DNA from: Pocillopora damicornis
Taxonomy: Eukaryota
DNA: 64,000 nt
NCBI RefSeq assembly: GCF_003704095.1
Contig: NW_020846333.1
Span: 1-64,000 of the forward strand
Direction of reading: 5' to 3'
The position numbers were made by a program, and so were the translations under genes. Shown here piece by piece: positions 8,115 through 58,035 of the stretch. A model generated the notes under the pieces. It did not search any database, was not told the DNA's origin, and worked only from the letters and a program-made list of their open reading frames with translations. The stretch's first letter is position 1; each line of letters starts with the position of its first letter.

Positions 8115-8171
8115 ATTGGCCAGAGGAAGTCAGTTGTCGTGGACTTTGTGCTGTTTTCTCGGAAACTGAAA
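8115..8171 (+). promoter_or_regulatory. Class A promoter cassette: inverted CCAAT, ETS core GAGGAAGT, overlapping GAS (TTCTCGGAA 8156-8164) and ISRE-like GAAACTGAAA (8162-8171)
   Basis: Direct motif match, about 85-140 bp upstream of the ATG, conserved in paralogous promoters. Confidence 0.65.
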
Positions 8172-8254
8172 TAGTATCCCCTCGTTTCAGTGTTTTGACA
8201 GGGATCGTCGCTTGAATATCGAATGAGTTTAGTACAGTTTAACTGACGATCGTC

Positions 8255-9000
8255 ATGGATCCTCTCTTTAAGAATCTCAAGAAACAAGTTACTTGCTCAA
8301 TTTGTCTCGATACCTACACCGAACCCAAAACCATATCATGTCTTCACACATTTTGTTGCGAGTGTTTAGAGAGACATGCAAGAGTGAGCCAGAGACAAGG
8401 GAAATTCAGATGCCCCGAGTGCCAGGCAGAAATCAATTTACCAGAAGGAAATCGGTTCGACCGTTTGCCTAACAGCTTTTTCCACAAAAGTCTGTTAGGT
8501 GTCATTGAGGCGGAAGATCGCCAAGCCATTCCGAGGCAGCAACAGGGGACTTGCTCGCAGCATACGGAAGAAAGAGTACGTTATTACTGCTCCTCGTGTG
8601 AGGTGTATGTTTGTCCGATTTGCGTCACCGAAGACCACAGAGGCCATGCGTTTGACGTGCTTGAAAAAGCAGTGCAAGAGGGAAAGAAAAGCATAATGTC
8701 TGCTGTCGAGACCATCAAGGAAAAGGCAAACTTGTTTGGAGCAGAGCTAAGAAAATTAGAGGAAACTTCAGAGGATGTGGAAATGATTATCGCGATCGCT
8801 AAACAAGAAGTGTCGGAGGCAGCTGAACACGTGATCACAAAGACGCGACAACAAGAAAAACAGCTTTTAGAGTCCTTAGAAATGACGCGTAGGAAGAGAA
8901 TAGAGCAAATCAACTCGGCTAAACAAGAACTGGAATCTCTAATAAAAATAATAAACCGAGCAGCTGAATTTGCGGAGAATCTGGTGCAGAGAAGATCAGA
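8255..9000 (+). CDS. Class A TRIM-NHL, N-terminal part (RING, single B-box, coiled coil); truncated by gap
   Basis: RING plus CSQH..YYCSSCEVYVCPICVTEDH B-box; open to gap 9001. Confidence 0.9.
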
Positions 9001-10196
9001 NNNNNNNNNNNNNNNNNNNNNNNNNNNNNNNNNNNNNNNNNNNNNNNNNNNNNNNNNNNNNNNNNNNNNNNNNNNNNNNNNNNNNNNNNNNNNNNNNNNN
9101 AAAGTGATAGTGCCGGATATTTAAACGCGGACCGCTGTTTTTGATCGTCAATTGATTTTGAAAGTTCCTCATGATCATCTGTGAGTTTTTCTTTTAGTGC
9201 TAGACATGAGCCTTTTCAACAATTGAGGTTTAGGTGATATTATCTGCTTGACTGAAGATTGATTATTGAGAACGCAGTTTGAATTAATAACTGTTAAACT
9301 TTGTTTTAATAACCGGTTACATGAAGTGTGAAATGATATGTATGTTGGCAAAATTGAAGTGAGCGGGACAATAGATCTATAATTTGCAGCGTCGCTTTTT
9401 TATCAGTATTATTTCTTTTTTTGTGATAACGAACACCATACGATCAGACATAATTAGAATTCAAACATTTTGTCGACCTTTTTTAACCTAACTCTAATAA
9501 TTGCTCTTATTTAAATTCTCCATCCTTAACATTTCTCAATTATCTGTGTTCTCTGTGTTCTTACTAAAAGAGGATCCTTTTTCCTCTCCTCGCTCTTACC
9601 TTTTTGGTGTTAACCTTCAAAGGAACGCTCTCATTTCGAAGTTCCTTCTGCTTAACGGCAGTTCATGGTGTCGATAAAATATCACTACATTCTGTTGATT
9701 CAGTTCTAATTGTTTAAAGGACAAGATCACTCCAAAAATCGTGTACTTTTTTAACCAGCAGCAGAAAGTTTACACCAAGTCAAGGTCTAAACCCATTTTT
9801 TCAGCTTCCAAAATCACTTCAATCCCTATGAAAACTTATACCGCAAAATTCCTCACGCGCACCGCCATTTTGAATAGCTAATCATCCGCGCGGGATAAAT
9901 ACATTTCATTTGGTATGCGCCTACACAGGATACCTTTCTTTATCTGAGAATAAGACACTGGACTGTTTTGGCCTTAAAAGTATCATTAGAAGATGATTTT
10001 CTTTAAGGAGGTTTGTGACATATGTCTTGTCCAGATCTATTTCGTTAGCATCTCGAATCAATAGACACGAGTGAGCCTGGGTAAGCAACTACAATGTCTT
10101 TTAACAGAAACGTCACGCCGAGATACACACAGTGAGGTTACGATTCACCTTGACATGACCAAAGCACTTTGATCAACTTGGCGTGGAAACTTGAAA

Positions 10197-10433
10197 CTCG
10201 GAAGGCCAGTAACAACATAGCCAGAATTGCAACGCACTGGACACCTGAAGGCAAGCGAAGCAGAGGGCGCCCGAAAACAACTTGGCGCAGGACAGTAGAG
10301 AAGAGACTAAGGGGGCTCAATTACAGCTGGAGCACCATTGAAAAACTGGCTTAAGACAGAGAGGGTTGGAAGGATTTCGTTGCTGCCCTATGTGCCACAC
10401 ACAGGCGTGATGGGTAGTAAGTAAGTAAGTAAG
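10197..10433 (+). mobile_element. 3' end of an RTE-clade non-LTR retrotransposon with a (GTAA)n tail
   Basis: HWTPEGKRSRGRPKTTWRRTVEK..WSTIEKLA*DREGWKDFVAALCAT is the typical RTE ORF C-terminus, followed by gtagtaagtaagtaagtaag. Confidence 0.8.
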
Positions 10434-11858
10434 TTATTGTTATACCTTTTTCCTCATTAGGAAGGGTAATGTAATCAAGAGATGAAAAAAACCGCTACAT
10501 TTATTCGTCAAACTTTTCTTTTTTTTTTTTCTTCCAAAAATTATATCCTATCACGAAAGTAGTGCTCGAAAGAACAAAAATGCGAACTTTTCCGGTCATG
10601 TGTTTCCGACAAAAAGTGATCCATCAAACCATTTTTGCAGGATTAAAAAAAGCTCCTTAGGTTTGCAATGCGTGCAAGAGCTGTCATTGTTGTGGCACGT
10701 GCGATTCACAACGTTTAAAAACCAATCCTGTAAAACTCGCTTCTTCCACGGGATGAGTATCGAGTTCGCTGAGAAATCAGGAACGTGAGAAATCTTTAAG
10801 CAAGTTTATGCGGGAAAAAAAATTAAATCGCTGCAGTTTAGCCGATAACAGGTATAGAAACTTTTAAACAATAGAGAAAACCATGTTCAAATCTGTAAGG
10901 ATTCATCTGAGGTACGGAGTTTTGTTGCCTCAGCTCTGTTGTCCTGATGGCGAATTATTGTTAGAAAATAAATGAACTCGACATAACTTTTCTTTTAATT
11001 TCAAGGGGAAACCAAGGTACTAATGATTTAGCAATTTTTTTAAAATGTTTCCCACTGAATTTTTAAATAACTTTATCTCAAAACTAATCATTCATAACAA
11101 CAAATTGTACATAACTTTTAAGTCTTATTTATTAAATGCATTCCCAATTTGTCTCGCCTCGTTATGTGGAACAAAACCTAAGACTATTTTTTTCAAAACA
11201 GCTTAGAGCTAACACTTCAGTTTAGTTAGAAAATCATTAAACACCTCTAATTATGACGTAATTACCCAGTAGATGTCCATTTTTAAAAACAGTTGTCACC
11301 TTACTTCTTGTGCTTGTTAAACACTTATGCATGTGAAATTATGCAATCATAAATTGTTCTTGAATTAAAGCTTAATTAACAATGTATTTTCTTAGAAAAC
11401 ACTTAATAAATCTATTCTAAACAATCAATGGTTATAAAAAGCAGCACATGGTCTTAACGTTTTCCACCTATATATTCTCAGCCTATAAAAAAAGTCAAAC
11501 TTGTTACATGTTTCTATACAGCATGTAGTTTTTCTACTACCCTTAAAGTTCTTGCTCTAAATTATTCAAATTGCTACTGACAATGCGCAGAAATTCTTCG
11601 AACTTAAAGAAAAACTTAAGATCGGAGAAAAAAAATTAAAGAGGATATTAATAAACCGAGAAGAAACATGGATGGCTAAGTGGTGAGGGATGGAGAAGAT
11701 TAAAACGGCTTGGAACTGACGAACTTGAAAGACCTGGGCTAATTACTTCGGGTCAAAAGGTTTTGGTCTCTAAGAGTAATTGTGAGTCTTGATATAATCG
11801 CTATCAGTTCTTCCAGTGACAAAACAACATTAAAAATAAAACAAAACACAGGTAAGGC

Positions 11859-12184
11859 TCAAGGTGCTTTTGTTATCTCCACAGGCTTAGATAAATGAGT
11901 GATACTTTTGCCGGTGAAGCGACCATCTAAAGAAAACTGCTGAACCTGGTTATTGCCAAAGTCACATACTAAAAGAATATTGGAGCTGTCTACAAGCAAA
12001 TCATACAGCGTTTGAAATTTTCCATCTTGATACCCTTCTTTGCCAAACTTGTATAAGAATGTTCCTGACTGATCAAAAGCTTTTATGCGGTGGTGGCCTG
12101 CATCAGTTACGAGAAACATGTTTTTGTAAGGAATGCAGCAGGTTGGCCATAAAAGTTTCTCTGGGCCTTTGTCTCCAAATGTGA
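11859..12184 (-). pseudogene. TRIM-NHL 3' fragment (NHL blades 4-6) with a deletion removing the normal C-terminus; 5' part in gap
   Basis: Ends ...ITKAP* instead of ...ITKAPDGRILVTSxxxKKVYILK*. About 100 bp is deleted through the normal stop into the 3' flank. Confidence 0.65.
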
Positions 12185-13047
12185 NNNNNNNNNNNNNNNN
12201 NNNNNNNNNNNNNNNNNNNNNNNNNNNNNNNNNNNNNNNNNNNNNNNNNNNNNNNNNNNNNNNNNNNNNNNNNNNNNNNNNNNNTTCTAATTTTTCTCGT
12301 TTTATTATCTGCAACAAAACCTGGGACTATTTTTCAAATCAGTTTAAAGCTAACACTTCAGCTTAGTTAGAAAATCAATAAGCACCTATAATTATGACAT
12401 AATTACCCAGTAGATGCCCATTATTAGAAACAGTTGTCACCTTATTTCTTGTGCTTGTTTATTACTCATACATGTGAAATTATGCAATCGTAAATTGTTC
12501 TTGAATTAAAGCTTACTTAAAGATATATTTTCTTAGATTGAAAAACCTGCACTTAATCTGTCCTGACCAATCAGTGATTGCCAAAAGCAGCACATGGTCT
12601 TAACGTGTTCTACTTATATATTCTCAGCCTATAAAATAGTCGAAGTCGTTGAATGTTTATATACAGCATGTAGTTTTTCTGTTACACTACATATTTTTGA
12701 GGATTCTCTCTCAATTTCTTACTTTAGATTATTCAAATCGCTGTCGACGATGCACAGAAATACCTTGACCTTAAAAAAAAAACCAAATAAAACTTCAGAT
12801 CAGAGAAATAGCTATTAAAGAGGATATTAATAAACCAAGAAGAAACATGGATGGCCAAGTGACGACGGATGGAGAAGATTAAAGCGGCTTGAACTACTTC
12901 AAGTCAAAAGGTTTTTGTCTCCAAGTGTAATTGTAAGTCTTGATATTATCTAAGAGTTCTTCCAGACAAATGATAAAACAGTATTAAAAGTAAAACAAAA
13001 CACAGGTAAGGAGTGGTTTAAGAAGCAAAGTTCACTTTTGAAAGAGT

Positions 13048-14025
13048 CTATTTCAAAATGTACACTTTTTTCTGATCATGGCTAGTAACAAGAATACGCC
13101 CGTCTGGTGCTTTTGTTATCGCCATAGGCTTAGATAATCGAGTGATACTTTTGCCGGTGAAGCGACCGTCTAAAGAAAACTTTTGAACTCGGTAATTGTC
13201 AGTGTCACATACTAGAAGATTATTGGAGCTGTCTACAAGTAAACCACGCGGCAAGTTAAATTGTCCATCTTGATTCCCTTTTTTGCCAAACTTGTATAAG
13301 AATGTTCCTGACTGATCAAAAGCTTTTATGCAGTGCTTTTCTTTATCAGATACGAGAAACATGTTTTTGTGAAGAACGCAGCAGCTTGGACCATGAAGTT
13401 TCTCTGGACCTTTGTCTCCAAATGTGAAAATAGACTCTCCTTCCTTTGACATTACCTGTATCCTATTATTTTCTCTCTCGGTTACAATAATACGCTCTAC
13501 ATCATCCACAGTAACGTCTACTGGATTACCTAACTCTCCTTTCTCTTTACCGAATTTTCCAAAACTTTTCACCACAGTTCCTGTCTGAATATTAAGTCGT
13601 TGTATTCTGCAATTCCCTAGGTCTGCAATTAGGACTTCGTTGTCATTAAAAAACGAAATGCCACGAGGGTACTGAAACTGTCCTGTATTGCTACCCTCGC
13701 CTCCAGTTTTTCTCAAACAGTTGCCATCTTTATCAAAAACATAAACACAGTGGCCAAAGTTATCTGTCACAACTATCTGGCCTTCTGTATTCACAGCAAT
13801 GCCATATAACCGTTCAAACTTGTCCCCTGGAAAGAGCTTTAACTTCAACTCACTGATCACAAAAAGTTCACGTTCTTTAACCTGCACAGTCATGGGACAG
13901 GTCGGTAGTTTATCGCCATTAATCTTCACTTCAATGTTGTAGGCCCCTGGTACTTTGGGAGTAAACTTCAACCTAAGATTGCCATTTTCTTTCTCTTCAA
14001 CAATCACGTCTGTAATATCCTTGAC
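13048..14025 (-). CDS. TRIM-NHL C-terminal half (class B-type filamin end plus six NHL repeats); 5' part in gap
   Basis: IVEEKENGNLRLKFTPKVPGAY filamin motif; six NHL blades ending KKVYILK*. Confidence 0.9.
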   Translation of the reverse strand, partial: VKDITDVIVEEKENGNLRLKFTPKVPGAYNIEVKINGDKLPTCPMTVQVKERELFVISELKLKLFPGDKFERLYGIAVNTEGQIVVTDNFGHCVYVFDKDGNCLRKTGGEGSNTGQFQYPRGISFFNDNEVLIADLGNCRIQRLNIQTGTVVKSFGKFGKEKGELGNPVDVTVDDVERIIVTERENNRIQVMSKEGESIFTFGDKGPEKLHGPSCCVLHKNMFLVSDKEKHCIKAFDQSGTFLYKFGKKGNQDGQFNLPRGLLVDSSNNLLVCDTDNYRVQKFSLDGRFTGKSITRLSKPMAITKAPDGRILVTSHDQKKVYILK

Positions 14026-14125
14026 NNNNNNNNNNNNNNNNNNNNNNNNNNNNNNNNNNNNNNNNNNNNNNNNNNNNNNNNNNNNNNNNNNNNNNNNNNN
14101 NNNNNNNNNNNNNNNNNNNNNNNNN

Positions 14126-15367
14126 TTCCGATGCCCCGAGTGTCAGGCAGAAATCGATTTACCACAAGGAAATTGCTTCGACCGCTTGCCTAGCAGCTTT
14201 TTCCACAAAAGTCTGTTAGGTGTCCTTCTTGAAGCGGAAGATTGCGAAGCCATTGCGAGTCAACAACTGGACACTTGCTCGCAACATACGGAAGAAAGAG
14301 TACGATATTACTGCTCCTCGTGTGAAGCGTGTATTTGTCCGATTTGCGTCACCGAAGACCACCGAGGCCATGCGTTTGAAATGCTTGAAAAAGCAATGCA
14401 AGAGGATAAGAAAAACATTATGTCGACTGTCGAGACCATCAAGGAAAAGGTAAACTTGTTTCGAGCACAGTTAGAAAAAACATCAGAGGATGTGGAAATG
14501 ATTATTGCAATCGCTAAACAGGAAGTGTCGGAGGCAACTGAAGACGTGATCACAAAGACGAGACAGCAAGAAAAACAGCTCTTAGAGTCCTTAGAATAGA
14601 ACGAATGCCACACGTAAAAAAAGAATAGAACGAATCAACTCGGCTAAACAAGAACTGGAATCTCTAATAAAAAAAATTAACCAAGCAGCTGAATTTGCGG
14701 AGAGTCTGGTGCAACGAAGATCAGCTGTGGATATCATACAGAACAAAAACAAATTGAGGCAGAAACTTGAAGAGCTTCGTAGAGTTGAAGTTCCAAAACA
14801 TCGCCAGGCTACATTTGTCAAATTTACTGCCGCATCGCAACACAACTTTAAACTGGGTTCTATTCAGGTCTCCGAGAAGCCGGCAATCGCAGCTAAATCA
14901 ACTCTAGAAGGACTGGATCAAACTTTTCAAGTTGGTGTAGAAGCAAAGTTTACGTTGTGCCCACGGACATCTGGCGAGAGATGAGTGACCACGCTGATCT
15001 CAAAGATGAAGTCGAATTGCTAATAACATCCGCCAAAGATGTGACGAATGTGACTCTTGATGAGAAATATGACGGTAACGTTAGGCTGAAGTTTATTCCC
15101 AAAGTACCTGGGGCCTACAGCACTGAGGTGAAGATTAATGGCGATAAACTACCAACCTGTCCTATCACTGTGCAGGTTAAAGAACGTGAACTTGTCGTGG
15201 TCGGTGAGTTGAAGTTAAAGTTCTTTCCAGGGCACACGCTTGAACGGTTATATGGAGTTGTTGTGAATACAGAAGGCCAGATAGTTGTGACAGATAACCT
15301 TGGCAACTGTGTATATGTTTTTGATAAAGATGGCAACTGTATGAGAAAAATCGGAAGCAAGCGTAGC
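14126..15367 (+). pseudogene. Class A TRIM-NHL pseudogene (frameshifted), flanked by gaps
   Basis: Small insertion with stop at ~14597 (ttagaatagaacgaat) and a 1-bp deletion at ~14975 split the homology over three frames. Confidence 0.85.
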
Positions 15368-15467
15368 NNNNNNNNNNNNNNNNNNNNNNNNNNNNNNNNN
15401 NNNNNNNNNNNNNNNNNNNNNNNNNNNNNNNNNNNNNNNNNNNNNNNNNNNNNNNNNNNNNNNNNNN

Positions 15468-17167
15468 TACAAGTAAACCACGCGGCGGGTTAAATTGTCC
15501 ATCTTGACTCCCTTCTTTGCCGAACTTGTATAAGAATGTTCCTGACTGATCAAAAGCTTTTATGCAGTGGTTGCCCAAATCAGATACGAGAAACATGTTT
15601 TTGTAAAGAGTGCAGCAGCTTGGCCATAAAAGTTTTTCTGGGCCTTTGTCTCCAAATGTGAAAATAGATTCCCCCTCCTTTGACATCACCTGTATCCTAT
15701 GATTGCCCCACTCGGTTACAACAATGCGTTCGTCATCATCCACAGTAACGTCTATTGGCCTATCAAACTCTCCTTTTTCTCTGCCTTCTTTTCCAAAACT
15801 TTTCACAACAGTTCCTGTCTGAATATTAAGTTGTTGTATTCTGCAATTGCCTGAGTCTGCAATTAGGACTTCGTCGTCATTTAAAAACGAAATGCTATCA
15901 GGAGAAAGAAATTGTCCTGTATTGCTACCCTCGCTTCCAATTGTTCTCAAATGGTTGCCATCTTTATCAAAGACATATAAACAGTCGCCAAAGTCATCTG
16001 TCACAACTATCTGGCCTTCTGTATTCACAGCAATTCCACATAACCATCTAAGCGTGTCCCTAGGAAAGAGCTTTAGCTCCAACTCACCGACCACAACAAG
16101 TTCACGTTCTTTTACCTGCACAATCATTGGACAGGTCGGTAGTTTATCGCCATTAATCTTCACTTCAATGCTGTAGGCTCCAGGTACTTTGGGAGTAAAC
16201 TTTAGGCTAACATTTCCGTCGTACTCCTCATCAACAGTCACGTTTGTCACATCTTCGGCGGGTTTTAGTAGCAATTCGACTTGATCTTTGAGATCATCGT
16301 GGTCACTCATCTCCCCTCCAGATGTCCGTGGGCACAACGTAAACTTTGCTTCTACACCAGCCTGAAAAGTTTGATATAGTCCTTCTAAAGTTGATTTAGC
16401 TGCGATTGGCGGCTTCTCGGAGACTTGAATAGAACCCAGTTTAAAGTTGTGTTGCGATGCGGCGGTAAATTTGACAAATGTAGCCTGGCGATGTTTTGGA
16501 ACTTCAACTCCATGAAACTCTTCAAGTTTCTCCCTCAATTTGTTTTTGTTCTGTAGGATGTCTGCAGCTGATCTTCTCTGCACCAGGTTTTCCGCAAAGT
16601 CGGCTGCTTCATTCATTTGTTTTACTAGAGATTCCAGTTCTTGTTTAGCCGAGTTGATTCGCTTTATTCTCCTCCTACGCGTCATTTCTAAAGACTCTAA
16701 GAGCTGTTTTTCTTGTTGTCGCGTCTTTGTGATTATACGTTCCGTTGCCTCCGACACTTCTTGTTTAGCGATTGCAATAATCATTTCCACATCCTCTGAT
16801 GTTTTCTCTAATTTTCTTAACTCTGCTCGAAACAAGTCTGCCTTTTCCTTGATGGTCTCGACGGTCGACATGATGTTTTTCTTCTCCTCTTGCACTGCTT
16901 TTTCAAGCAAGTCAAACGCATGGCCTCGGTGGTTTTCGGTGACGCAAACTGGACAAACACTCGCCTCACACGTAGAGCAGTAATATCGCAGTCTTTCTTC
17001 CGTATGTTGCAAGCAAGTCTCCTGTTGTTGCCTCGAAATGGCCTGGCAATCTTCCGCTTCAAGGACACCTAACAGACTTTTGTGAAAAAAGCTGTTGGGC
17101 AAAAGGTCGAAGCGATTTCCCTCTGGTAAATCGATTTCTGCCTGACACTCGGGGCATCGGAATTTCC
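15468..17167 (-). CDS. Class A TRIM-NHL, both ends lost in gaps; visible part uninterrupted
   Basis: Open frame from KFRCPEC through B-box, coiled coil and filamin to NHL blade 5 (GQFNPPRGLLV). Confidence 0.9.
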
Positions 17168-17267
17168 NNNNNNNNNNNNNNNNNNNNNNNNNNNNNNNNN
17201 NNNNNNNNNNNNNNNNNNNNNNNNNNNNNNNNNNNNNNNNNNNNNNNNNNNNNNNNNNNNNNNNNNN

Positions 17268-17490: not shown

Positions 17491-20470
17491 TGACATTTTG
17501 AAATAAAGTTATGTAAAAAATTCATTGGATACATTGTTTTACTAGCAGCTTGGTTTCCCTGGAAAATAAAAAAAGTCATGGCGAGTTCATTTATAGTCTA
17601 ACTATAATCGGCCATCAGGAACCGGAGCTGAGGCAACAAAACTCCATACCTCTTCACGGGACAAAACAGGGATAAGCAGTAGTGGTGAAGAGTCATTAGT
17701 GTTGTAAGATAAACCCTCACACTATTTTGAGAAATGCACTATTTAAAAATTTCTATATCCATAATCGGCTAAACGGTAGCGATTTCATGTTCATATGAAC
17801 TCGCTTACAGATTTCCCGGTACATGTCCCTGATTGCCTAGCGAACTTGACACTCATCCCGAGGAGGAAGCGAGTTCTCAGGGTTGGGTTTTAAACGATGT
17901 GAATGGCATGTACCACAACAATCACAGCTCTTGCACGTACGTATTGCAGACCTTAATCCTGCAACAATGGTTTTATGGATCACTCTTTGCTGGAATCACA
18001 TGACTAGAGAGGTTTGCATTTTTGTTCTTACGAGCACTACTTTCATTCTACGACATAATTTTTGTAAAAAAGAAAAAATAAGAAAAGTTTTGACAAGTAA
18101 ATGTAGCGGTTTTTTCATCTCTTGGTAATATTACCCTTCCTAGTGAAAAAAAAATGATAACAATAAAGCAATAGAAAATAAACAAATAAATTCATTGATG
18201 AGTTTAAAAAAAAAAATTTCGAATAAACAAATAAATAAAACGTGAATGAAAATAACTGTCGACCCATTTCTTCCACTAAACCATCAGAAACACCGGCGAA
18301 TTGTTGAGTAATTGAATATTTTATACAAAACCAAATGGAACAAACTACATAAAGTGCTTATTGAACGGGTTAACACGATGGTAAATCAGAACTCACCTCA
18401 AATATTTCAATTTTTGCCTGCTTCATTTGGATATTACATAATTTGTCAACGTTTAAATATACATGAATCACTATTGCGGACCTATTTCTGTTGCAAACCT
18501 TTGGGTCAGTTTAGACAAATGGGAAGTATCCATGGTTAAGACAAGAGAGGATGATCCTCTTTTGATTAAGAGGAATATATCCCGGGCAATTTTTTGTTTC
18601 TTGAGATGAACGTCGAATTTATGAAACTGTAACGAGTTCGCTTTCATATAAATTTACCCCTTTGCCGCCTTTAACGGGAAGCGAAATAAACAAGCGGCAT
18701 GTGGCTAATTTGCATAAATCAGCTAGTGTGCCTTCCTGTCTGACCTGAAGATTGAAGTACAAACTTCACAATTTCCGGTGTTATCATGGCCAATTTACAT
18801 TATCAACTCAGTTGACAAGAACAAATCATTTTGACACTCTGTCCATTATTAAAATTATCAAGAAGGATTTCCATTTTTAACTGAAAAGAATAAATTGAAG
18901 TTTTTGTCTTGCTTTTTTCTTAAAGAACCTTGACGATTCGACAGTTCATAAAATTCGAGGATATTGAGAAGCATGTGTTAAAAAAAAAGTTTGAAGCCAA
19001 CGGATAAACAGTTGCATGTCACAAACGGAGGAGGTCATGGCAGATTTCCGTTTTGTTTTCTCGGAAATCTAAATATAGCCTTTAAAAGCAGCTTTCTAGT
19101 TTTTCAAAAGAAAATACTCAATTTTCTGTTTACCTCGAACGATTTCCTAAAAAACATTAGCGTCTTGTCTGCACTCTCAAAGTTCACTGAGAATAACTAA
19201 TTAAAGATAGACTCCATATAAGGAAGACGTAAAGTATGGTCGAATGTCTCGCCACAAGAAAGCAAAAAAACTAATTTCGGTCTCAGTTAACGTTGATAAA
19301 GAAGTTGACAAATTCCCTTTCATGGGCGAGAGAGGGGGTAGGGAGAGAAGAAATGACCATATTTTGAAGAAATACGAAGGCCAACACATTTCTAAAATGA
19401 GCCTTATATACACGTTTTGTGATTTTCAGATAATTGTCGCTCCTCATTTTAAAATTTTCCTCCCAAAACGCCCGAAGCTTTCCCTCCAGTTAAAATCCAT
19501 GAATTCTTTCATCCTCTATTAACGATAACACTCCAAGGACGGATTTGCAGTTTTTAAAAATAAAGCTATTAGACAACAATAATTCAACTCAGATAAAAAG
19601 TCTAACCTTACAACGAAGACAACTGAGCCAAGGAAAGTGACAGGCCAGAAATAGATCCAATTAAATGAACATTGCCTTATTTTCTAGGAATCTGAAGCAG
19701 AGGCCAACTGTTTGAATTTTTGTAAGTATTATCCACCCTTATGTGGAGTTACATGCAAAAATTTCTTCCTCGAAATGCGCATCGATAACAGTCTGAGAAC
19801 TAAGAAGGAAAATCGCACCACAAGATTGTCCGTCAAAGTGACAGACGTTCCTTTATCCTGAGCAGAAGTTATCATTTGAGTAAACACACGAGTTGTTTGC
19901 TGGTCAATGTTGTTAGTCTCGTTTTGGGTTTCGTTCCATCAAACATTCGACTAATTTAACTGGCGATTAGCGGGTTTTCGTTTTTTTCGGAGAAGTGCAA
20001 CATCAACGTTAAAAGCTGCGACCGAGTGGCGGAGAGTATAACAGGGAAAATTGAAAATACTTGATCGCAGGTTACTTTTCGAGGGACAAACAATTCTTTC
20101 ACTGATCATCCTGATAATGACCTGTGCTCAGGTTACGAAACATCAGTAACTACTATTGCTAACAGTTCCCCACGGATAAACTCACTCGACACGATCCTCT
20201 GTTACGCTCGAGTTCGAATGAGCAACAACAAGAAAAAACAAACAAGCAAAAAGCTGTTGTACATACTGGACTGGTGCCATTACTTTTTCCCTTCAATTCA
20301 TGACCACTTAGGCGAAGGTTGATTCGACAGTTCAAAAACAGCCTCTTACTGCGTTTTTCCAAATCACACTTTGTAACATTTATGCCTTTAATCGCTTTTA
20401 TCGAGGCTTCATCACAGATAACAACGTCTTTTTTATCATTACAAAAAGGTCACTTAAGTCCTGAAGTGCA

Positions 20471-20527
20471 ATTGGCTAGAAGAAGTCAGTTGTCATAGAC
20501 TTTGCGCTGTTTTCTCGGAAACTGAAA
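20471..20527 (+). promoter_or_regulatory. Class A promoter: ATTGG, GAS TTCTCGGAA (20512-20520) and ISRE-like GAAACTGAAA (20518-20527)
   Basis: Direct motif match about 100 bp upstream of ATG 20619. Confidence 0.65.
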
Positions 20528-20618
20528 TAATATCTCTGATTTCGTATGAGTGTTTTGACTAAGCTCGTCGCTTTAATATTGGTAACACATCAGTTAACTA
20601 CAGTTTAACGCGATCGTC

Positions 20619-22646
20619 ATGAATCCTCTCGTAAAGAACCTCACGAAACAACTTACTTGCTCGATTTGTCTCGATACCTATACCGAGCCCAAAACTATAT
20701 CATGTCTTCACACATTTTGCTGTGAGTGTTTAGAGAGACATGCAAGAGTGAGCCAGAGACAAGGGAAATTCAGATGCCCCGAGTGTCAGGCAGAAATCGA
20801 TTTACCACAAGGAAATCGCTTTGACCGTTTGCCTAACAGCTTTTTTCACAAAAGTCTGTTAGGTGTCCTTGAAGCGGAAGATCGTGAAGCCATTCCGAGG
20901 GAACAACAGGACACTTGCTCGCAACATACGGAAGAAAGAGTACGATATTACTGCTCCTCGTGTAAGGTGTGTATTTGTCCGATTTGCGTCACCGAAGACC
21001 ACCGAGGCCATGCGTTTGATGTGCTTGAAAAAGCAGTGCAAGAGGAGAAGAAAAACATCGTGTCGACTGTCCAGACCATCAAGGAAAAGGCAAACTTGTT
21101 TCGAGCAGAGTTAAGAAAATTAGAGGAAACATCAGAGGATGTGGAAATGATTATCGCGATCGCAAAACAAGAAGTGTCGGAGGCAACTGAACACGTGATC
21201 ACAAAGACGCGACAACAAGAAAAACAGCTTTTAGAGTCCTTAGAAGTGATTCGTAGGAAAAGACTAGAGCGAGTTAACTCGGCTAAACAAGAACTGGAAT
21301 CTCTGGTAAAAATGCTCCAAGGAGCTGAATTTGCGGAGGATCTGGTGCAAAGAGGATCAACTGTGGATATCATACAAAACAAAAACAAATTGAGACAGAA
21401 ACTTGAAGAGCTTCGTGGAGTTGAAGTTCCAAAACATCGCCAGGCTACATTTGTCAAATTTACCGCCGCATCGCAACACAACTTTAAACTGGGCTCTATT
21501 CAAGTCTCTGAGAAGCCGGTTATCGCAGCTAAATCAACTTTAGAAGGATTAGATCAAACTTTTCAGGTCGGTGAAGAAGGAAAGTTTACTTTGTGCCCAC
21601 GGACATCCGAAGGAGAGATGAGTGACTACGCTGACCTCAAAGATCAAGTCGAATTGCTGATAACACCTGCCAAAGATGTTACAAACGTGACTGTTAATGA
21701 GAAATATGACGGAAATTTTGGGCTAGAATTTACTCCCAAAGTACCTGGGGCCTACAGCATTGAAGTAAAGATTAATGGAGATAAACTACCGACCTGTCCC
21801 ACGATTGTGCAGGTTAAAGAACGTGAACTTGTTGTGGTTGGTGAGTTGAAGTTAAAGCTCTTTCCAGGGGACAAACTTGAACGTTTATATGGAGTTGCTG
21901 TGAATACAGATGGCCAGATAGTTGTGACAGATAACCGTGGTAAATGTGTATATGTTTTTGATAAAGATGGCAACTGTATGAGAAAAATTGGAAGCAAGCG
22001 TAGCTATACAGGACAGTTTCAGTTTCCCAATGGCATTTCGTTTTTAAATAACAACGAAGTCCTTATTGCAGACTCGAGCAATTGCAGAATACAACGACTT
22101 AATATTCAGACAGAAGCTATAGTGGCGAGTCTAGGAAGAAAAGGTAGAGAAAAAGGAGAGTTTGGCATGCCTATAAACGTTACTGTGGATGATAAAGAAC
22201 GCATTGTTGTAACTGAGTGGGACAATCATAGGATACAGGTGATGTCAAAGGAGGGAGAGTCTATTTTCACATTCGGCGACGACGGCCCAGAGAAACTCCA
22301 TTATCCAAGTTGCTGCCTTCCATACAAAAACGTGTTTCTCGTGACTGATGCAGGCAACCACTGCATAAAAGCTTTTGATCAGTCAGGAATATTCCTATAC
22401 AAGTTTGGCAAAAGAGGGTATCAAGATGGACAATTTAAAACGCCGAATGGTTTGCTTGTAGACAGCTCTAATAATCTTCTAGTATGTGACTCTGGCAATA
22501 ATCGAGTTCAACAGTTTTCTTTAGACGGCCGCTTCACCGGCAAAAGTATCACTCGTTTATCAGACCCCACTTCGATAACAAAAGCACCAGACGGAGGTAT
22601 TCTTGTTACTAGCTTTGATGAGAAAAAAGTGTACATTTTGAAATAG
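20619..22646 (+). CDS. Intact class A TRIM-NHL E3 ubiquitin ligase (RING-Bbox-CC-filamin-6xNHL), 675 aa, single coding exon
   Basis: Complete ATG-to-TAG ORF with all domain motifs recognisable. Confidence 0.95.
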   Translation: MNPLVKNLTKQLTCSICLDTYTEPKTISCLHTFCCECLERHARVSQRQGKFRCPECQAEIDLPQGNRFDRLPNSFFHKSLLGVLEAEDREAIPREQQDTCSQHTEERVRYYCSSCKVCICPICVTEDHRGHAFDVLEKAVQEEKKNIVSTVQTIKEKANLFRAELRKLEETSEDVEMIIAIAKQEVSEATEHVITKTRQQEKQLLESLEVIRRKRLERVNSAKQELESLVKMLQGAEFAEDLVQRGSTVDIIQNKNKLRQKLEELRGVEVPKHRQATFVKFTAASQHNFKLGSIQVSEKPVIAAKSTLEGLDQTFQVGEEGKFTLCPRTSEGEMSDYADLKDQVELLITPAKDVTNVTVNEKYDGNFGLEFTPKVPGAYSIEVKINGDKLPTCPTIVQVKERELVVVGELKLKLFPGDKLERLYGVAVNTDGQIVVTDNRGKCVYVFDKDGNCMRKIGSKRSYTGQFQFPNGISFLNNNEVLIADSSNCRIQRLNIQTEAIVASLGRKGREKGEFGMPINVTVDDKERIVVTEWDNHRIQVMSKEGESIFTFGDDGPEKLHYPSCCLPYKNVFLVTDAGNHCIKAFDQSGIFLYKFGKRGYQDGQFKTPNGLLVDSSNNLLVCDSGNNRVQQFSLDGRFTGKSITRLSDPTSITKAPDGGILVTSFDEKKVYILK

Positions 22647-40021: not shown

Positions 40022-40484
40022 TTACTCTCGAGCTCAACTGAGCAACAACAACGAAAAAAACAAATAATTAGGGAAACAAAAAAATTGTCCCACATACTGG
40101 ACTAGTGCCATTGCTTTTTCCCCTTAACTCATGAACATTTGGGCGAAGGTTGATTCGACATTTCATTTTAATTATACGATCAATTTAATTTATCATAAAA
40201 TCACACTTTGTTACATTTATTGTTTTAATCGCTTTCATCTGAAAGCACCTTAAGTTACCCATTTAACGACTGTCTTAGAATGAAGGTTATACCTCAGACA
40301 ACAAAGTCTGTTCATCATTACGTCCCAAGGAAAGGTTAGCTAAGCCCTCGTATTTGATTGGCCAAAAGACGTCTGTTGTGTCTGTGTTGTTTTCTCGGAA
40401 ACAGAGAAATATCTCTGATTTCGTATGGGTGTTTTGACAGGGCTTGAATAATGAATACGTTTCTTACAGTTTAAGGCGATCGTT

Positions 40485-41430: not shown

Positions 41431-43596
41431 TTTAGCAAATAAACAAGAATTACTATTGCGGACCTATCTCTACAGAGAAACTTCTAGTCAGTTCAGACAA
41501 ATGGGAAGTATCCATAATTAATATGAATATATCAGTGGACATTTTTTTTTGTTGAGATAAAGATCCAGCGCAAGAAAATTTAAAGATTTCGTAGTTCGTT
41601 TTTAACTCTCCACTCGCTCCATACCCCTCCCCTCCTCTCCCCCTCCCCCCCCTCTCCCCCTCTCCCCGATTTCTCGCGAAAAAAGTGCGAGCGAAACGGG
41701 AAGGGAAATAAACAAGCGACAAGTGGCTTATTTGCATAAATTAGCTCGCGTGCCTTGCTGCATGACCTGAAGATACAAAATACTCTCATTCCCTCACGAT
41801 TACTGATGTTGTTGAACAACATACTCTATTCAATAATAAAAGCTACAGCACTTACAACAAATAAGAAATAATTCAAACTGTCCGTTCATGTTTGATCATC
41901 TCACCTCGATTAGCAATTGTCGATTTTATTATAGTGACGGCGTTACGTTTCGATGATAACTCTGTCCATTAAGATTAAAACTATTAAGTATGATTTACAT
42001 CGTCAACTGTTACGAGTAAATTGAAGTATCGTCTGTTATTTCTTTAACCTTCGATTCACTTGTTGCTTCCCAGTTCTACAAATTGTATCTCGCTTTAAGA
42101 GCCTTAATGATTCGACAGTCAATCAAATTCCAGGATATTGAAAGGAATATGTTTAAAAAATAAGTTACATGGCGACAGATAAGCAGTTGTAAGTAACAAA
42201 CTGAAGAGGTCAACTAACCTATTGAATTTGGTCAGTCAAGTCATGACAGATTTCACTCTGTTTTCTCGGAAATTTATATATAGTCGTAAAAAGCAGCTTC
42301 AAGGTTTTTCAAAATAAAACTATTTATTTTCTGTTTTCAGTCACTGATGTCCTCAAAACCATAAGCGTTTAGATATCTGTGCTTTCAAAGATCTCTGGGA
42401 ATGACTAAACCGAGGACAACCTCCTAATAAGATAGATGAGAAATACAGTCCAATGTCTCGCCAGAGGAATGTGAATCACGAATTATTATGTCGGTCTCAG
42501 CTAATGACGTTGTTGTCAGTCAAATTTCTTTTCGTGCGAGAAGGGGTTGCCACTGACGACGGAATAACTGAGAAAACACGAGGAAAGGGAAGAGGAGGGA
42601 AGGAGGCATTGATTACATTTTAAAGAACTATAAAGGCCTAATCTCGTACCTAGATCCTCCCGATTGTAACTGTAACTGTAACTGAAACCGCTTTGCCGTG
42701 ATAAAGGCTAAAAGATTTGTAAAATGAATCCGTTACGAACGTTTTGTGCTTTTTTAGAATCTTTACGTTTCTCATTTAAATCTTTCCCTCTTGTGAGGTA
42801 CCGAAGTTTACCCTTCAGTTTAAATCCATGAATTCTTTCATCCTTTACCCAACGGCAGATTTTCAAAAATTTTAAGCCTCTTAGCAAGACAACTGTAAAG
42901 TCACTTCAATCATTTCGCAATAGATAAACAGTCTAACTTCATAGAGGTCAACGGAGCCAAGAAGTGACAGCCTAAGCAACAAAGTAGTTGACGGCTGACT
43001 TTGTTCTGTTTTCTAGGAATCTAAAACAAAGTCGGTTTGTTTGAACGTTTTTACGCACTGCCCATCCTTTTGATAAGCTACAGGCAATTTAACATTTCTT
43101 CCTCGCACTCCTTCAAATGCCCATCGACGACAGCCTCGAGAAGAACAATCTCACCATAAGATTTGCAGTCTTACTGTGAAACGATTGAGTTGTACAAACT
43201 TCTGAGTGGGAGTGGCCCTTAAAACAACTGTTGTCCGTGACAATGTCAAACCACTAGAATAACTTAATTTCGTTCTATAACAAATCTCGTACACGAAACC
43301 TCGTTTGCTACGTTTTTCCAAATCCCATTTAGTCAAATTCCTAGCTGTCTATAATTGCTTTTATTTCAAGCAACTTTAATTAAGCTAAGTTTAGTTGTCT
43401 AAAATCGAGGCTTCATCCAGACAACAACGTATTTTTATCATTACAAAAGGGCCAGCTAAGTCCTGAAATGCAATTGGCTAGAGGAAGTCAGCTGTCATAG
43501 ACTTTGTGCTAATTTTTCTCGGAATTCGTATGAGTGTTTAAACAGGGCTCGTCGCTCTAATAACACATCAATTAACGACAGTTTAAGGCGATCGTC

Positions 43597-46700: not shown

Positions 46701-47806
46701 GGAGTAAATGTAGTGGTTTTTCCATCTCTTCTATATTTGCCTTTACTACAGAGAAACTGAGTCGAAGATGAGGCAATATATAAATGATTTAATAAATGAA
46801 TCAAAAATGATAAAAAATAGTTCTTATTTATCTCTTCCCTTCTTCCACCCCCCCTTCCCCCCCCTCCCTTCCCCCCCCCCTCCCCGGCTCACCCCCATCC
46901 CTCTCTCCTGATTTCTCACGAACAAAGTGCGAGCGAAAGGGAAGCATAATAAACAAGCGACATGCGGCTGATTTGCATAAATTAACTAGCGTGCCTTGCT
47001 GCATGACCTGAAGATATAAAAATTTGGATTCCCAGTCGCTCACGATTACCGATGTTGTTAAGTAACATACTCTATTCAATAACAAAAGCGAAAGCGTTTA
47101 CAATAAATAAAAAATTCATTCAAACTGTCCGTGCATGTTTGATAATCTCACCCTATGTGGCAATTGTCGATTTTCGTAACGTGACGCGATTCGTTTCGAT
47201 AATAACTCCGTCCATTACGATTAAAACTATCAAGTTTGATTTCCATCGTCAACTACAACGAGTAAATTGAAGAGGTCAACTAATATATTGAATGTGATCT
47301 CTGAGGTCATGACAGATGTCCGTTCTGCTTTCTCGGAAATCTAAATATAGTCGTAAAAAGTAGCTTGATGGTTTTTCAAAAGAAAACTATTTATTTTCTG
47401 TTTTCAATGAATGATGTCTTCAAAACCAAAAGCGTTTAGATATATGTGTTTTCAAAGATCTCTGGGAATGGCTAAACCGAGGAGATATAAGATAGATGAG
47501 AACTTTAGTCGAATGTCTCGCCGGAGGAATGCAAATTACGAATTATTATTTCGGTCTCAGCTGGTAACGTTGTTGCCAGCCAAATTTCCTTTCATGGGAG
47601 AAGGGGTTGCCACTGACAACGGAATAACTTAGTCTAAGTTCTGGAATGCGATTGGCCAGAAGAAGTCAGTTGTCATGAATTTGAGCAATTTTTATTGCAA
47701 ACTGATTGTATTGTAGTGTCTAGTCTGTTAAATCATATATACAAGTGTCTTAACAGGGCTCGTCGCTGAAAAACGGATCAGTTTACAACAGTTTAAGGCG
47801 TTAGTC

Positions 47807-50017
47807 ATGAATTCTCTCCCTAAGAATCTCAAGAAACAAGTTACTTGTTCGATTTGCTTCGATACCTACGCAGAGCCCAAAACTATATCATGTCTTCACA
47901 CGTTTTGCTGTGAGTGTTTGGAGAAACATGTAAGAGTGAGCCAGAAAAAGGGAAAATTTCGATGCCCCGAGTGTCAGGCAGTGATCGATTTACCAGATGG
48001 AAATCGCTTCGACCGTTTGCCTACCAGCTTTTTCCATAAGAGTTTATTGAATCTTCTGGCTGTTCGAAAGGGTGGTGCGGCAAGTAGCTTTACCTGTTTT
48101 CAATGCAGTGCAACCAACCCCCAGATGTACTACTGCTTCGACTGCGAACGATTCATGTGCCCTGATTGTTTCAACGCACATGAATTGCTCAAGAAGTCTT
48201 TTCAAGGACACAAAGTCACACCAGTTCAAGACTTCAAAACAGAAGATTACGAAGCATTGTTAAAGAGACAACCGTTTTGTTCTCGGCAGTTCCACGAGAG
48301 AGAAATTACACGGTTCTTTTGCTCGCAGTGTCAAGTTTGCATTTGTCAAATTTGCATAGTCACGGATCATCAAAACCACAAAGTTGTTGTGCTCGACAAA
48401 ATAGCACACGAGGAAAAGGATAACATGATGTCGGGCGCTAAATTGATCAAGAAAATGGAAAACAAGCTCCGTGAAGTCATTAAGCAGTTTAAAGAAACCA
48501 TTTCGAAGCTGGAAAGCAATATGGAAACGGCTAAGCGAAGCGTCAAGCAAGCAGCTGAGGAAATGATCGCAGATATTCGAGAGCGCGAGCGAGAGGCGTT
48601 GGAATCCCTCGAGGAAACACGCGCGTCGAGACTCCATAAAATTAACTCGGCTAAACAGGAAGTGGAATCCTTAGTAAAACAAATGAACCAAGCAGCTCAG
48701 TTTGCGGAAAATCTAGTGCAGGGAACCTCAAGCTCGGATATTATGCAGAACAAAGAAACTATAAGGACCAAATTTGAAGAGCTTCTGCGAGTTGAAGTTC
48801 CAAAACATCAGCAGACGACATTCATTAAATTCACTGCAGCATCTCACAAGGACTTGAAACTGGGTTTCATTGAAGTCACTGAAGACGCAGCAAAGGCAGC
48901 TAAATCAACTTTAGACGGACTGGATCAAACTTTCCAGGCTGGAGTAGAAGCAGAGTTTACGTTATATCCAAAGAAATCTGGAGATGAGATGAGTAACCAG
49001 GCTGATCTTAAAAGTCGAGTTGAATTGCTGGTTAAACCCGTCAAGGATGTTACAGACGTGATTGTCGAAGAGAAAGAGGACGGCAATCTTGCATTGAAGT
49101 TTACTCCCAAAGTACCTGGCGCCTATAGCATTGAGGTGAAGATTAATGGCGATAAACTATCGACCCGTCCCATGACTGTGCAGGTAAAAGAACGTGAAAT
49201 TGTTGTGGTCGGTGAGTTGAAGTTAAAGCTCTTTAAAGGGAACACTCTTGAACGGTTATTTGGAGTTGCTGTGAATACAGAAGGCCAGATAGTTGTAACA
49301 GATAACTTTGGCCACTGTGTTTATGTCTTTGACAACAATGGCAACTGTTTGAGAAAAAGTAGAGGCGAGGGTAGCAATACAGGACAATTTCAGTACCCTA
49401 ATGGCATTTCGTTTTTTAATGACAACGAAGTCCTGATTGCAGACTCAGGAAATTGCAGAATACAACGACTTAATATTCAGACAGGAACCGTGGTCAAAAG
49501 TTTTGGAAAAAGAGGCAGGGGAAAAGGAGAGTTTGGCAGGCCATTAGACGTTACTGTGGATGATAAAGAACGCATTGTTGTAACCGAGTGGGACAATAAT
49601 AGGATACAGGTGATGTCAAAGGAGGGGGAATCTATTTTCACATTTGGAGACAAAGGCCCAGAGAAACTTTTATGGCCAACCTGCTGCATTCTTTACCAAA
49701 ACAGGTTTCTCGTATCCGATACAGGCAACCACTGCATAAAAGCTTTTGATCAGTCAGGAACATTGTTATACAAATTTGGCAAAAAAGGGAATCAAGATGG
49801 ACAATTTAACTGGCCGTATGGTTTGCTTGTAGACAGCTCCGATAATCTTCTAGTATGTGACTCTGGCAACAACCGAGTTCAGCAGTTTTCTTTAGACGGT
49901 CGCTTCACCGGCAAAAGCATCATTCGTTTATCTAATGTTACAGCGATGTTAACAGCACCAGACAGGCGTATTCTTGTTACTAGCCATGATGAGAAAAAGG
50001 TGTACATTTTAAAATAG
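47807..50017 (+). CDS. Intact class B TRIM-NHL (RING-B1-B2-CC-filamin-6xNHL), 736 aa
   Basis: Complete ORF with two B-boxes. Confidence 0.95.
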   Translation: MNSLPKNLKKQVTCSICFDTYAEPKTISCLHTFCCECLEKHVRVSQKKGKFRCPECQAVIDLPDGNRFDRLPTSFFHKSLLNLLAVRKGGAASSFTCFQCSATNPQMYYCFDCERFMCPDCFNAHELLKKSFQGHKVTPVQDFKTEDYEALLKRQPFCSRQFHEREITRFFCSQCQVCICQICIVTDHQNHKVVVLDKIAHEEKDNMMSGAKLIKKMENKLREVIKQFKETISKLESNMETAKRSVKQAAEEMIADIREREREALESLEETRASRLHKINSAKQEVESLVKQMNQAAQFAENLVQGTSSSDIMQNKETIRTKFEELLRVEVPKHQQTTFIKFTAASHKDLKLGFIEVTEDAAKAAKSTLDGLDQTFQAGVEAEFTLYPKKSGDEMSNQADLKSRVELLVKPVKDVTDVIVEEKEDGNLALKFTPKVPGAYSIEVKINGDKLSTRPMTVQVKEREIVVVGELKLKLFKGNTLERLFGVAVNTEGQIVVTDNFGHCVYVFDNNGNCLRKSRGEGSNTGQFQYPNGISFFNDNEVLIADSGNCRIQRLNIQTGTVVKSFGKRGRGKGEFGRPLDVTVDDKERIVVTEWDNNRIQVMSKEGESIFTFGDKGPEKLLWPTCCILYQNRFLVSDTGNHCIKAFDQSGTLLYKFGKKGNQDGQFNWPYGLLVDSSDNLLVCDSGNNRVQQFSLDGRFTGKSIIRLSNVTAMLTAPDRRILVTSHDEKKVYILK

Positions 50018-52335: not shown

Positions 52336-52392
52336 ATTGGTCAGAGGAAGTCAGCCGTGATGGACTTTGTACTGTTTTCTTGGAAACTGAAA
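52336..52392 (+). promoter_or_regulatory. Class A promoter: ATTGG, GAGGAAGT, GAS TTCTTGGAA (52377-52385), ISRE-like GAAACTGAAA (52383-52392)
   Basis: Direct motif match. Confidence 0.6.
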
Positions 52393-56542: not shown

Positions 56543-56795
56543 GAACGACTGTTGTCATACATTTCTTGGTAGCAATTTGCGTTGTTTGCCCAGCGGCGAT
56601 CCCAGAACCCTTTGCGCATAGCAGAGGGAGCCCCGATTACTGACAACTCATTCATTGGCCAGCGGGACTCAGTTGCGATGGACTTTGTGCTGTTTTCTTA
56701 GAAAGTGAATTAATATCTCTGTTTTCGTATACGTGTCTTGATAGGCCTCGTCGCTTGAAAAACGAATTAGTTTACTGCAGTTTAAGGCGATCGTC

Positions 56796-56915
56796 ATGGA
56801 TCCTCTCTTTAAGAATGTCAAGCAGCAAGTTACTTGCTCGATTTGTCTCGATACTTACACCCAACCTAAAACTATATCATGTCTTCACACATTTTGCTGT
56901 GAGTGTTTAGAGAGA
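56796..56915 (+). CDS. Class A TRIM-NHL 5' end (RING start); truncated by gap
   Basis: MDPLFKNVKQQVTCSICLDTYTQPKTISCLHTFCCECLER; preceded by GAS TTCTTAGAA (56695-56703) and GAAAGTGAA. Confidence 0.8.
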
Positions 56916-57471
56916 CNNNNNNNNNNNNNNNNNNNNNNNNNNNNNNNNNNNNNNNNNNNNNNNNNNNNNNNNNNNNNNNNNNNNNNNNNNNNNNNNNNNN
57001 NNNNNNNNNNNNNNNNTTTTTTAGAATCTTTACACGTTTCTCATTTAAATATTTCCCTCATGCAGCCACGAAGTTTTCTCTTCAGTTAAAATCCCCGAAC
57101 TCTTTCATCCTTTATCCAACGGTACATTTTCAAACATTTTAAGTCCCTTAGAAAGACAACTGTAAATTCAGTCAACCATTTCGCAGAAGATAAACAGTCT
57201 AACGTTACAACAGAGGTCAACTGAGCCATGAAGTGACAGCCTTAATTATAAATAAGTCGACGGCTGATTTTGTTCTGTTTTCTAGGAATCTGAAACAAAG
57301 CCGGTTTGTTTGAATGTTTTAATGCACTGCCCATCCTTTTCTAAAACTACAGGACTCCTCGAAATGCACATTGATGACAGTCTGAGAACCAAGAAGAACA
57401 ATCTCACCATGAGATTTGCGGACTTATTGTGAAACGACTGAGTTGTGCAAACTTCCGGGTAAGTGTGGTCC

Positions 57472-57680
57472 TTAACCCTTAATCTGTGAATGATCAGCAT
57501 CTGATTTCTCCTTTCAATATCACACATGAATCAAACATTACGGTCACGACAATAAAGAAAATGATAATTAACTAAAGAAACTATTGTTTGTTCAAAAAAT
57601 TCTCCTTGCCAGTACATTAGGAAATGTATAGAGAGCCGTATGAAGAATATTCGTATTGATGTTTAGGTGTAAAGGGTTAA
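57472..57680. mobile_element. TTAA-type MITE at the same paralogous site as 56332
   Basis: ttaaccctt ... aaagggttaa; matching flanks show the insertion predates the unit duplication. Confidence 0.75.
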
Positions 57681-57978
57681 AACGTCTGTTGTATGTGACA
57701 ATGACCAATGTTTCGTTACCCATTCTAGTGCAATTGGACTAAATTTCCTTTTATGATAGATCACTCGAAGATTGATTTGACCACTCACCATAAATATACG
57801 AAAAAAAGCCTCGTTTGTTGCATTGTCCAAATCACATTTATTGAAATTCTTGTCTTTAATTGCTTTTATTTGAAGCAACTTGAATTACCGAAAGTTTGGT
57901 TGTCTAAAATCGAGGTTTCATCTCTGTCAACATGGTCTTTTTATCATTACAAAAAGGTCAGCTAAGGCCTGGAATACG

Positions 57979-58035
57979 ATTGGCCAGAGGAAGTCAGCTG
58001 TCATGGACTTAATGCTGTTTTCTCGGAAACTGAAA
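57979..58035 (+). promoter_or_regulatory. Class A promoter: ATTGG, GAGGAAGT, GAS TTCTCGGAA (58020-58028), ISRE-like GAAACTGAAA (58026-58035)
   Basis: Direct motif match about 90-140 bp upstream of ATG 58120. Confidence 0.65.

Follow-up and report, generated by a model that had tools for sequence, protein, structure and literature searches.

A palindrome resembling STAT sites in the promoters of coral TRIM-NHL genes

The TRIM-NHL array and its promoter motif

We analyzed the first 64,000 nucleotides of contig NW_020846333.1 of the coral Pocillopora damicornis (RefSeq assembly GCF_003704095.1; positions 1 to 64,000 of the forward strand), hereafter the window. It carries a tandem array of intronless genes whose products contain RING, B-box, coiled coil, Filamin and NHL repeats, and 5' of their start codons lies a palindrome of the form TTCN3GAA, extended in some copies to the 16-mer TTCTCGGAAACTGAAA. 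The original prediction had read this 16-mer as a gamma-interferon activation site (GAS) overlapping an interferon-stimulated response element (ISRE), that is, as a composite site for STAT and IRF factors. GAS elements are the STAT sites of vertebrates and Drosophila and have the form TTCN3GAA, with TTCYNRGAA as the STAT5-type version. Our analysis was based on unannotated genome and metagenome sequence and on assembled RNA contigs.

Pfam searches found the complete set of TRIM-NHL E3 ligase domains (RING, B-box, coiled coil, Filamin and NHL) in the genes 3' of the motif. The architecture is TRIM2/3/71-like (TRIM-NHL; family TRIM2/3/45/71-like), and the genes are predicted to encode ubiquitin ligases. 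The proteins most similar to theirs, at 99% identity, are from Tara Pacific coral metagenomes, and the named relatives are TRIM3-like, TRIM71-like or TRIM45-like proteins of Pocillopora (P. verrucosa and P. damicornis), Stylophora pistillata and Oculina. Eleven gene 5' ends were located by tblastn, with ATGs at 7276 (minus strand), 8255, 20619, 33878, 40485, 43597, 46316, 47807, 52478, 56796 and 58120; we refer to genes by these positions. Four are intact (20619, 43597, 47807 and 58120), and the others carry frameshifts, survive as fragments or are interrupted by assembly gaps. Those at 9001, 14026, 15368 and 17168 each break a TRIM-NHL gene and have another copy, often on the opposite strand, on their far side. 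Since the two sides are pieces of different copies, the scaffold's copy order at 9-17.3 kb (9001-17267) is a guess, and the assembly lacks at least three promoters at these gaps. All motif instances and their ATGs lie in unbroken sequence, and none relies on joining across a gap; 160 nt separate the minus-strand site (7347) from the gap at 7516.

The 16-mer occurs exactly at 8156, 20512 and 58020 and as the one-base variant TTCTTGGAAACTGAAA at 52377, in each case 99-107 bp 5' of a TRIM-NHL ATG and behind an inverted CCAAT box. The palindrome without the ISRE half is found at 40392, 43516, 46258, 56695 and 7347, the last serving the minus-strand gene. These coordinates, and the distance of about 100 bp from the genes termed class A, are those given in the original prediction. 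Sites in the window span 58-107 bp 5' of the ATGs of RING/B-box/coiled-coil/Filamin/NHL genes. The palindrome is missing at two gene starts: the promoter of g33878 is divergent, and the homologous position in g47807 reads TTATTGCAA. With up to three mismatches allowed, the 16-mer has 19 matches in the window against 1.5 expected, a number reached in none of 100 shuffles. The composite consensus, TTCN3GAA plus GAAANNGAAA, has five matches against 0.33 expected, and four copies fit both consensuses exactly; the bare TTCNNNGAA is weakly enriched over the whole window (44 against 34 expected). The boxes predicted to precede the motif, an inverted CCAAT and an ETS-like GAGGAAGT, are both present at g8255, but GAGGAAGT is intact in four of the eight class A copies and absent from deeper paralogues.

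Conservation of the palindrome and of its ISRE-like neighbor

The case for a selected element comes from outside the recent duplicates. At least 89 TRIM-NHL N-terminal matches were found in this genome (234 Mb, 4393 contigs), and we surveyed 500 bp 5' of 71 gene starts, chosen without regard to the motif, of which 59 were usable. TTCN3GAA was present between -130 and -30 from the ATG at 31 of these 59 starts, compared to a shuffle mean of 1.75, and the same half-sites spaced by N1, N2, N4 or N5 occurred 1, 2, 0 and 0 times. Many paralogues with 48-70% identity over the N-terminal 140 residues have TTCTCGGAATCTCAAA exactly at -50 from the ATG in otherwise unrelated flanks. Paralogues are non-independent samples, which the divergence of the flanks and the spacing control mitigate.

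The same position is occupied in other corals. Among 80 TRIM-NHL loci taken from metagenomes (L125-L204; 71 usable), 56 have the palindrome between -79 and -35, where shuffles average 2.4 and the other spacings give counts of 1-3. The nearest named proteins to these loci are from Oculina (75-78%), and the two loci tested have a DNA identity to this genome of at most 76%, with similarity ending at the ATG. In Oculina patagonica itself, both of two neighboring genes have TTCTCAGAA, at -63 and -68, in DNA that 5' of the ATG is otherwise not alignable. The dominant form is TTCTCGGAA (TTCYNRGAA), accounting for 16 of 35 proximal sites in this genome and 39 of 56 in other corals. Distant TRIM subfamilies have inverted versions, TTCCGAGAA and TTCCAAGAA, between about -60 and -110.

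A conservation profile over 22 window copies peaks on GTT-TTCT-N-GGAA, with palindrome position 4 dropping to 0.5 and all others at 0.91 or above; this profile is anchored on the motif, which favors motif letters, whereas the ATG-anchored promoter counts are free of that bias. The original prediction had the spacer varying between fixed TTC and GAA. This holds for the central base, the main variable, but positions 3 (T) and 5 (G) are ~91% conserved, and the frequent spacer variants TTG and TCA are CpG-decay products of TCG. The element thus has the TTCN3GAA palindrome, the 3-nt-specific spacing and the constrained half-sites around a free dyad base of a GAS element. Persisting in diverged flanks across coral genera and across deep paralogues that share 30-70% amino-acid identity, the palindrome is, on this comparative evidence, a selected, promoter-proximal element, and it very probably acts as a functional cis-element throughout the family. 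The selection on TTCN3GAA claimed in the original prediction is therefore borne out, with N3 specificity, across paralogues and genera, where the motif is conserved above flanking DNA, but not among the recent class A duplicates, whose promoters are discussed below.

The ISRE-like half did not share this conservation. Its core, GAAACTGAAA, is restricted to the Pocillopora class A subcluster, with the consensus GAAANNGAAA at 8161, 20517, 52382 and 58025. The class A sequence reads …GGAAACTGAAA and the family with the palindrome at -50 reads …GGAATCTCAAA; outside class A the position of the ISRE half is variously filled by GGAATCTCAAA, GGAATCACAAA, GGAATCTGAAA, GGAAACTAAAA or GGAAACTAAGA. GAAANNGAAA was found at 0 of the 56 other-coral palindrome sites, at 0 of the 2 Oculina sites and in no non-class-A paralogue of this genome. 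Within class A it is lost in four of eight copies, being decayed in g40485, g47807 and g56796 and deleted in g43597. The ISRE half is not conserved among homologous promoters. The 3' extension of the palindrome is loosely constrained (W-C-W-N-A-A-A), and the ISRE consensus arises only with an A at extension position 9 and a G at position 12. We infer that the ISRE half is a local variant, one state of this loose extension, rather than a conserved IRF site, and its resemblance to an ISRE is likely incidental. A composite GAS/ISRE would keep both halves jointly and be common to unrelated induced genes; here the palindrome alone was retained.

Cassette architecture and genomic distribution

The position of the motif relative to other promoter boxes was surveyed in 93 promoters with the motif. 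A TATA-like box begins 27-32 nt 5' of the motif in 30 of 31 cases; the alternative is an inverted CCAAT at -41/-42 (34 cases) together with TGACG at -20 (31 cases). In this cassette the motif stands 50-107 nt 5' of the ATG. Because the usual distance from TATA to the start is ~30 nt, a box at -27 to -32 would place the start on the motif, and the motif is predicted to lie at, or within ~15 nt of, the transcription start. Rather than standing upstream of the predicted start, it appears to overlap it; at the least the motif is probably close to the start, possibly overlapping it or within the 5' untranslated region (UTR). Four independent RNA runs yielded contigs over g20619, with coverage from ~20600 to 23400. 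One poly(A) contig extends over 20471-20534, taking in the motif and the 41 nt 5' of it; assembled contigs give no readout of transcript starts. Transcript-derived contigs were also looked for, and all cluster members came from metagenomic DNA. All four RNA runs share a joint at 22829-23169, where 339 bases of the g20619 3' UTR are replaced by 57 others, a difference from the assembly that is probably an indel between alleles or strains.

Twelve additional, distal copies of the cassette lie in the window, 480-940 bp 5' of genes (Table 1). TATAAATA precedes some of them at -33, and some are followed ~45 nt downstream by GTAAGT, like a short first exon. These copies may serve as alternative promoters or as first exons without coding sequence. 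The gap at 25695 begins 34 nt past the distal copy at 25646. In other corals (L125-L204; L205:9800-10000, 19610-19810), a sharply conserved TGACGTTAAT, similar to a cyclic AMP response element (CRE), stands 20 nt 5' of the palindrome; the CRE-like site is degenerate in the class A Pocillopora copies (GTCATGGAC).

Table 1. Promoter motif sites, intact genes and distal cassettes in the window
Feature	Position	Strand	Remarks
Class A proximal cassette of g8255	8115..8171	+	Inverted CCAAT 8115-8119, GAGGAAGT 8123-8130, motif 8156-8171; ATG 8255; gene cut by gap 9001
Class A cassette of g20619	20471..20527	+	CCAAT 20471-20475, motif 20512-20527, ATG 107 bp on
Class A cassette of g52478	52336..52392	+	TTCTTGGAAACTGAAA; downstream gene frameshifted
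Class A cassette of g58120	57979..58035	+	ATG 58120
Palindrome site, ISRE half decayed (TTCTCGGAAACAGAGA)	40392..40407	+	5' of gene fragment at 40485
Palindrome site of g43597	43516..43524	+	ISRE half removed by ~20-bp deletion; gene intact
Palindrome site, TTCTAGGAA	46258..46266	+	5' of 82-aa gene fragment at 46316
Palindrome site, TTCTTAGAAAGTGAAT	56695..56710	+	5' of g56796, which gap 56917 cuts
Palindrome site, TTCCAGGAATCTGAAA	7340..7355	-	79 bp 5' of minus-strand gene, ATG 7276
Palindrome lost (TTATTGCAA)	47691..47699	+	Homologous position in g47807
g20619	20619..22646	+	Intact, intronless TRIM-NHL, 675 aa; RING, B-box, Filamin, NHL
g43597	43597-45624	+	Intact
g47807	47807-50017	+	Intact, 736 aa
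g58120	58120-60144	+	Intact, 674 aa
Distal cassette type 1 (TTCTAGGAATCTGAAG)	19682..19697	+	GTAAGT ~45 nt downstream; sisters 25646, 39399, 43011, 56124, 57280
Distal cassette type 2 (TTCTCGGAAATCTAAATATAG)	19058..19066	+	Sisters 7779, 25107, 42263, 47330, 55395

A genome-wide search for the 16-mer, one-mismatch versions included, returned 51 sites, four of them in the window, compared to 12 in the control. Ten of the one-mismatch matches are an interspersed repeat (TTCTCGAAAACTGAAA), which has conserved flanks and is unrelated to TRIM genes (C548:186946, C574:999, C1129:63683, C1681:3129, C1890:30854 and others; L010, L011, L018, L024, L027, L029 and L030). At another 26 16-mer loci nothing matched TRIM or the promoter block, and in the 10 of these that were examined no recognizable open reading frame (ORF) lay within 1.5 kb. 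The exact 16-mer was found at three sites outside the window, none near a TRIM gene or a recognizable ORF. The extended family motif TTTTCTCGGAATCTC, allowing up to one mismatch, has 62 sites against 45 in the control and is thus barely enriched overall. A STAT/IRF regulon beyond the TRIM family, as had been proposed, was not visible in these 16-mer and extended-motif searches. In this unannotated genome the "regulon" would, as far as we could see, be the gene family itself, spread by duplication. At C325:131352 (L008), a lone TTCGCGGAAACTGAAA precedes an ATG by 15 nt, and a GTGAGG donor comes after that ATG; an unrelated gene may have its promoter here.

Candidate factors, alternative readings and meaning

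Genes for the factors named in the original prediction are present. We found a multi-exon STAT gene on the minus strand of contig C1014 (G000:C1014:61598-66857; L124) with collinear STAT_alpha, STAT_bind, STAT_linker and SH2 domains, the STAT_linker scoring 38.9 bits. Introns split the STAT_bind domain, and a search for that family at the default threshold therefore missed the gene; relaxing the threshold and scanning exon by exon against Pfam brought it out. Four loci encode an IRF DNA-binding domain (117-129 bits; C2500:185153, C580:80421, C1462:98398 and C1173:164965). In a by-eye check of other known motifs, ETS, NF-kB, HSF (2-nt spacing), E2F, ZNF143, the TCT initiator and the 5'-terminal oligopyrimidine (5'-TOP) motif all matched the conserved letters poorly.

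We lean towards the view that the 16-mer is the form which an old promoter element, specific to the TRIM-NHL family of corals, takes in Pocillopora class A. Its constrained core is the palindrome TTCTCGGAA, preceded by a short T-run; the element has been copied with each gene duplicate and then held by purifying selection. A dimeric factor that recognizes the palindrome by sequence would dock there and gate initiation across the family. The single coral STAT is the best individual candidate for that factor: the half-sites are exact, 3 nt is the sole enriched spacing, the dyad base varies freely, the genome has a STAT gene, and vertebrate TRIM genes are STAT targets. We propose STAT as the binder only tentatively, and give the same tentative credence to binding by another factor. 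The stronger proposal, that a STAT-type palindrome fixed at the start is an ancient stony-coral switch co-regulating the whole TRIM-NHL repertoire through a single STAT and without interferon, we consider unlikely.

Several points weigh against the element as a selected STAT-type switch. Among the four intact class A genes, promoter identity is 0.70-0.88, compared to 0.70-0.86 at four-fold degenerate sites; as the promoters are no more alike than synonymous sites, conservation of the 16-mer inside the window is not evidence of constraint. The palindrome loss in g47807 is identical in its P. verrucosa orthologue (L048:5179-7589). A GAS that overlaps the start in a single orientation, with co-conserved asymmetric flanks, is atypical of STAT sites. 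The motif is limited to one gene family, and intact TTTTCTCGGAATCTC copies lie almost only on TRIM-bearing contigs. The poly(A) contig reaching 41 nt 5' of the motif implies that some transcripts may start further upstream. Finally, single STAT or IRF knockdowns in Nematostella left cGAMP-induced genes unchanged (PMC8713801). As a side observation, g47807 and its P. verrucosa orthologue form a natural loss-of-motif control.

The likeness of the class A promoters also feeds the view that the 16-mer has no function and is repeated merely through recent tandem duplication or gene conversion of promoters with their genes. The ~190-bp promoter block has been copied whole with each gene duplicate, not the motif alone; the CCAAT box and the stretch GGACTTTGTGCTGTT are as well kept among window copies as the 16-mer; and the motif is retained in pseudogenised copies. 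For the palindrome this view is contradicted by its survival in unalignable flanks (the 48-70% paralogues, other genera and Oculina) with box spacing fixed, although it is viable for the ISRE half alone; as an account of the element we judge it very improbable indeed. Joint binding of a composite GAS and ISRE by STAT and IRF, marking an interferon-independent antiviral regulon and applying to class A only, would explain the four copies that match TTCN3GAA and GAAANNGAAA exactly, is served by a genome that encodes a STAT and four IRFs, and has precedents in the STING-IRF-Vago-JAK/STAT antiviral axis of shrimp (10.1101/2022.12.18.520954) and the cGAS/STING-TBK1-IRF axis of oyster (PMC8218723). 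The composite is also kept in Pocillopora relatives (P. verrucosa, Tara contigs); however, identity to the window is ~98% for promoters from P. verrucosa and Tara Pacific, and a difference of 1-2% leaves within-genus footprinting without power and this conservation without weight. With GAAANNGAAA missing from every other-coral, Oculina and non-class-A site, the ISRE half decayed or deleted in half of class A, and the exact 16-mer adjoining no recognizable gene at its three sites elsewhere, the composite reading is weak and we regard it as quite improbable.

A more serious competitor, though still doubtful, is an initiator-type core-promoter or 5'-UTR element that overlaps the start, is used by the basal machinery or a non-STAT factor, and resembles a GAS by coincidence. 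The rigid 27-32 nt from TATA-like boxes, the constant orientation, the asymmetric conservation that reaches the upstream T-run and the downstream WCWNAAA, the GTAAGT ~45 nt past distal copies, as for short first exons, and the inclusion of the motif in an RNA contig all speak for it, and a fixed ~28-30 nt from a TATA-like box is shared with initiator (Inr) elements. But general elements are expected genome-wide, among the promoters of the genome at large, and the extended motif TTTTCTCGGAATCTC is nearly confined to TRIM loci; the coral motif lies outside the Inr/TCT consensus and belongs to one gene family only. In addition, constraint falls on exactly the letters of the two STAT half-sites and spares the dyad base, enrichment is seen for N3 spacing only, and distant TRIM subfamilies carry the inverted versions.

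Compared with known GAS elements, the coral element has the same half-sites, 3-nt spacing and free central base, and it is promoter-proximal in immune-type TRIM genes of a genome that encodes a STAT with a DNA-binding domain; it differs in that it lies at the predicted start, belongs to a rigid cassette, keeps a single orientation and has co-conserved flanks. We regard it as a putative new example of a promoter-proximal GAS-like element and as a candidate member of the GAS family. Likeness to the ISRE or IRF element (GAAANNGAAA) extends to the core GAAACTGAAA abutting the palindrome in four window copies and in Pocillopora orthologues, and to the four IRF genes, whereas the coral ISRE half is unconserved in paralogues and other corals and lost in half of class A. 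Vertebrate interferon-inducible TRIM clusters, such as the TRIM5/6/22/34 cluster and the fish finTRIMs, are likewise tandem expansions. Both are tandem arrays of RING/B-box E3 genes in which a promoter module is inherited with each duplicate and pseudogenes are many; however, the coral genes are intronless and end in Filamin and NHL rather than B30.2/SPRY, and the module they share consists of the palindrome with either CCAAT/TGACG or TATA.

Cnidarians possess STAT and IRF genes and show antiviral-like responses that are induced. To our knowledge, corals have no interferon, and we know of no cis-element that has been defined in cnidarians as linking STAT or IRF to their targets; our literature search found no paper on this motif or on coral TRIM-NHL promoters. 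The shrimp and oyster axes share with Nematostella, which has one STAT, five IRFs and an induced response to 2'3'-cyclic GMP-AMP (2'3'-cGAMP) (PMC8713801), the concept of IRF and STAT acting in induced defense in animals that lack interferon. A 9-bp palindrome that spans genera and holds a fixed place in dozens of promoters of an expanded, putative immune family is a concrete and cheap object for a test. If STAT does not bind it, a new family-specific promoter element would have been defined. If STAT does, the element would anchor a pre-bilaterian STAT regulon, and an ancient STAT switch, if it is one, would be the cnidarian counterpart of interferon-stimulated TRIM induction.

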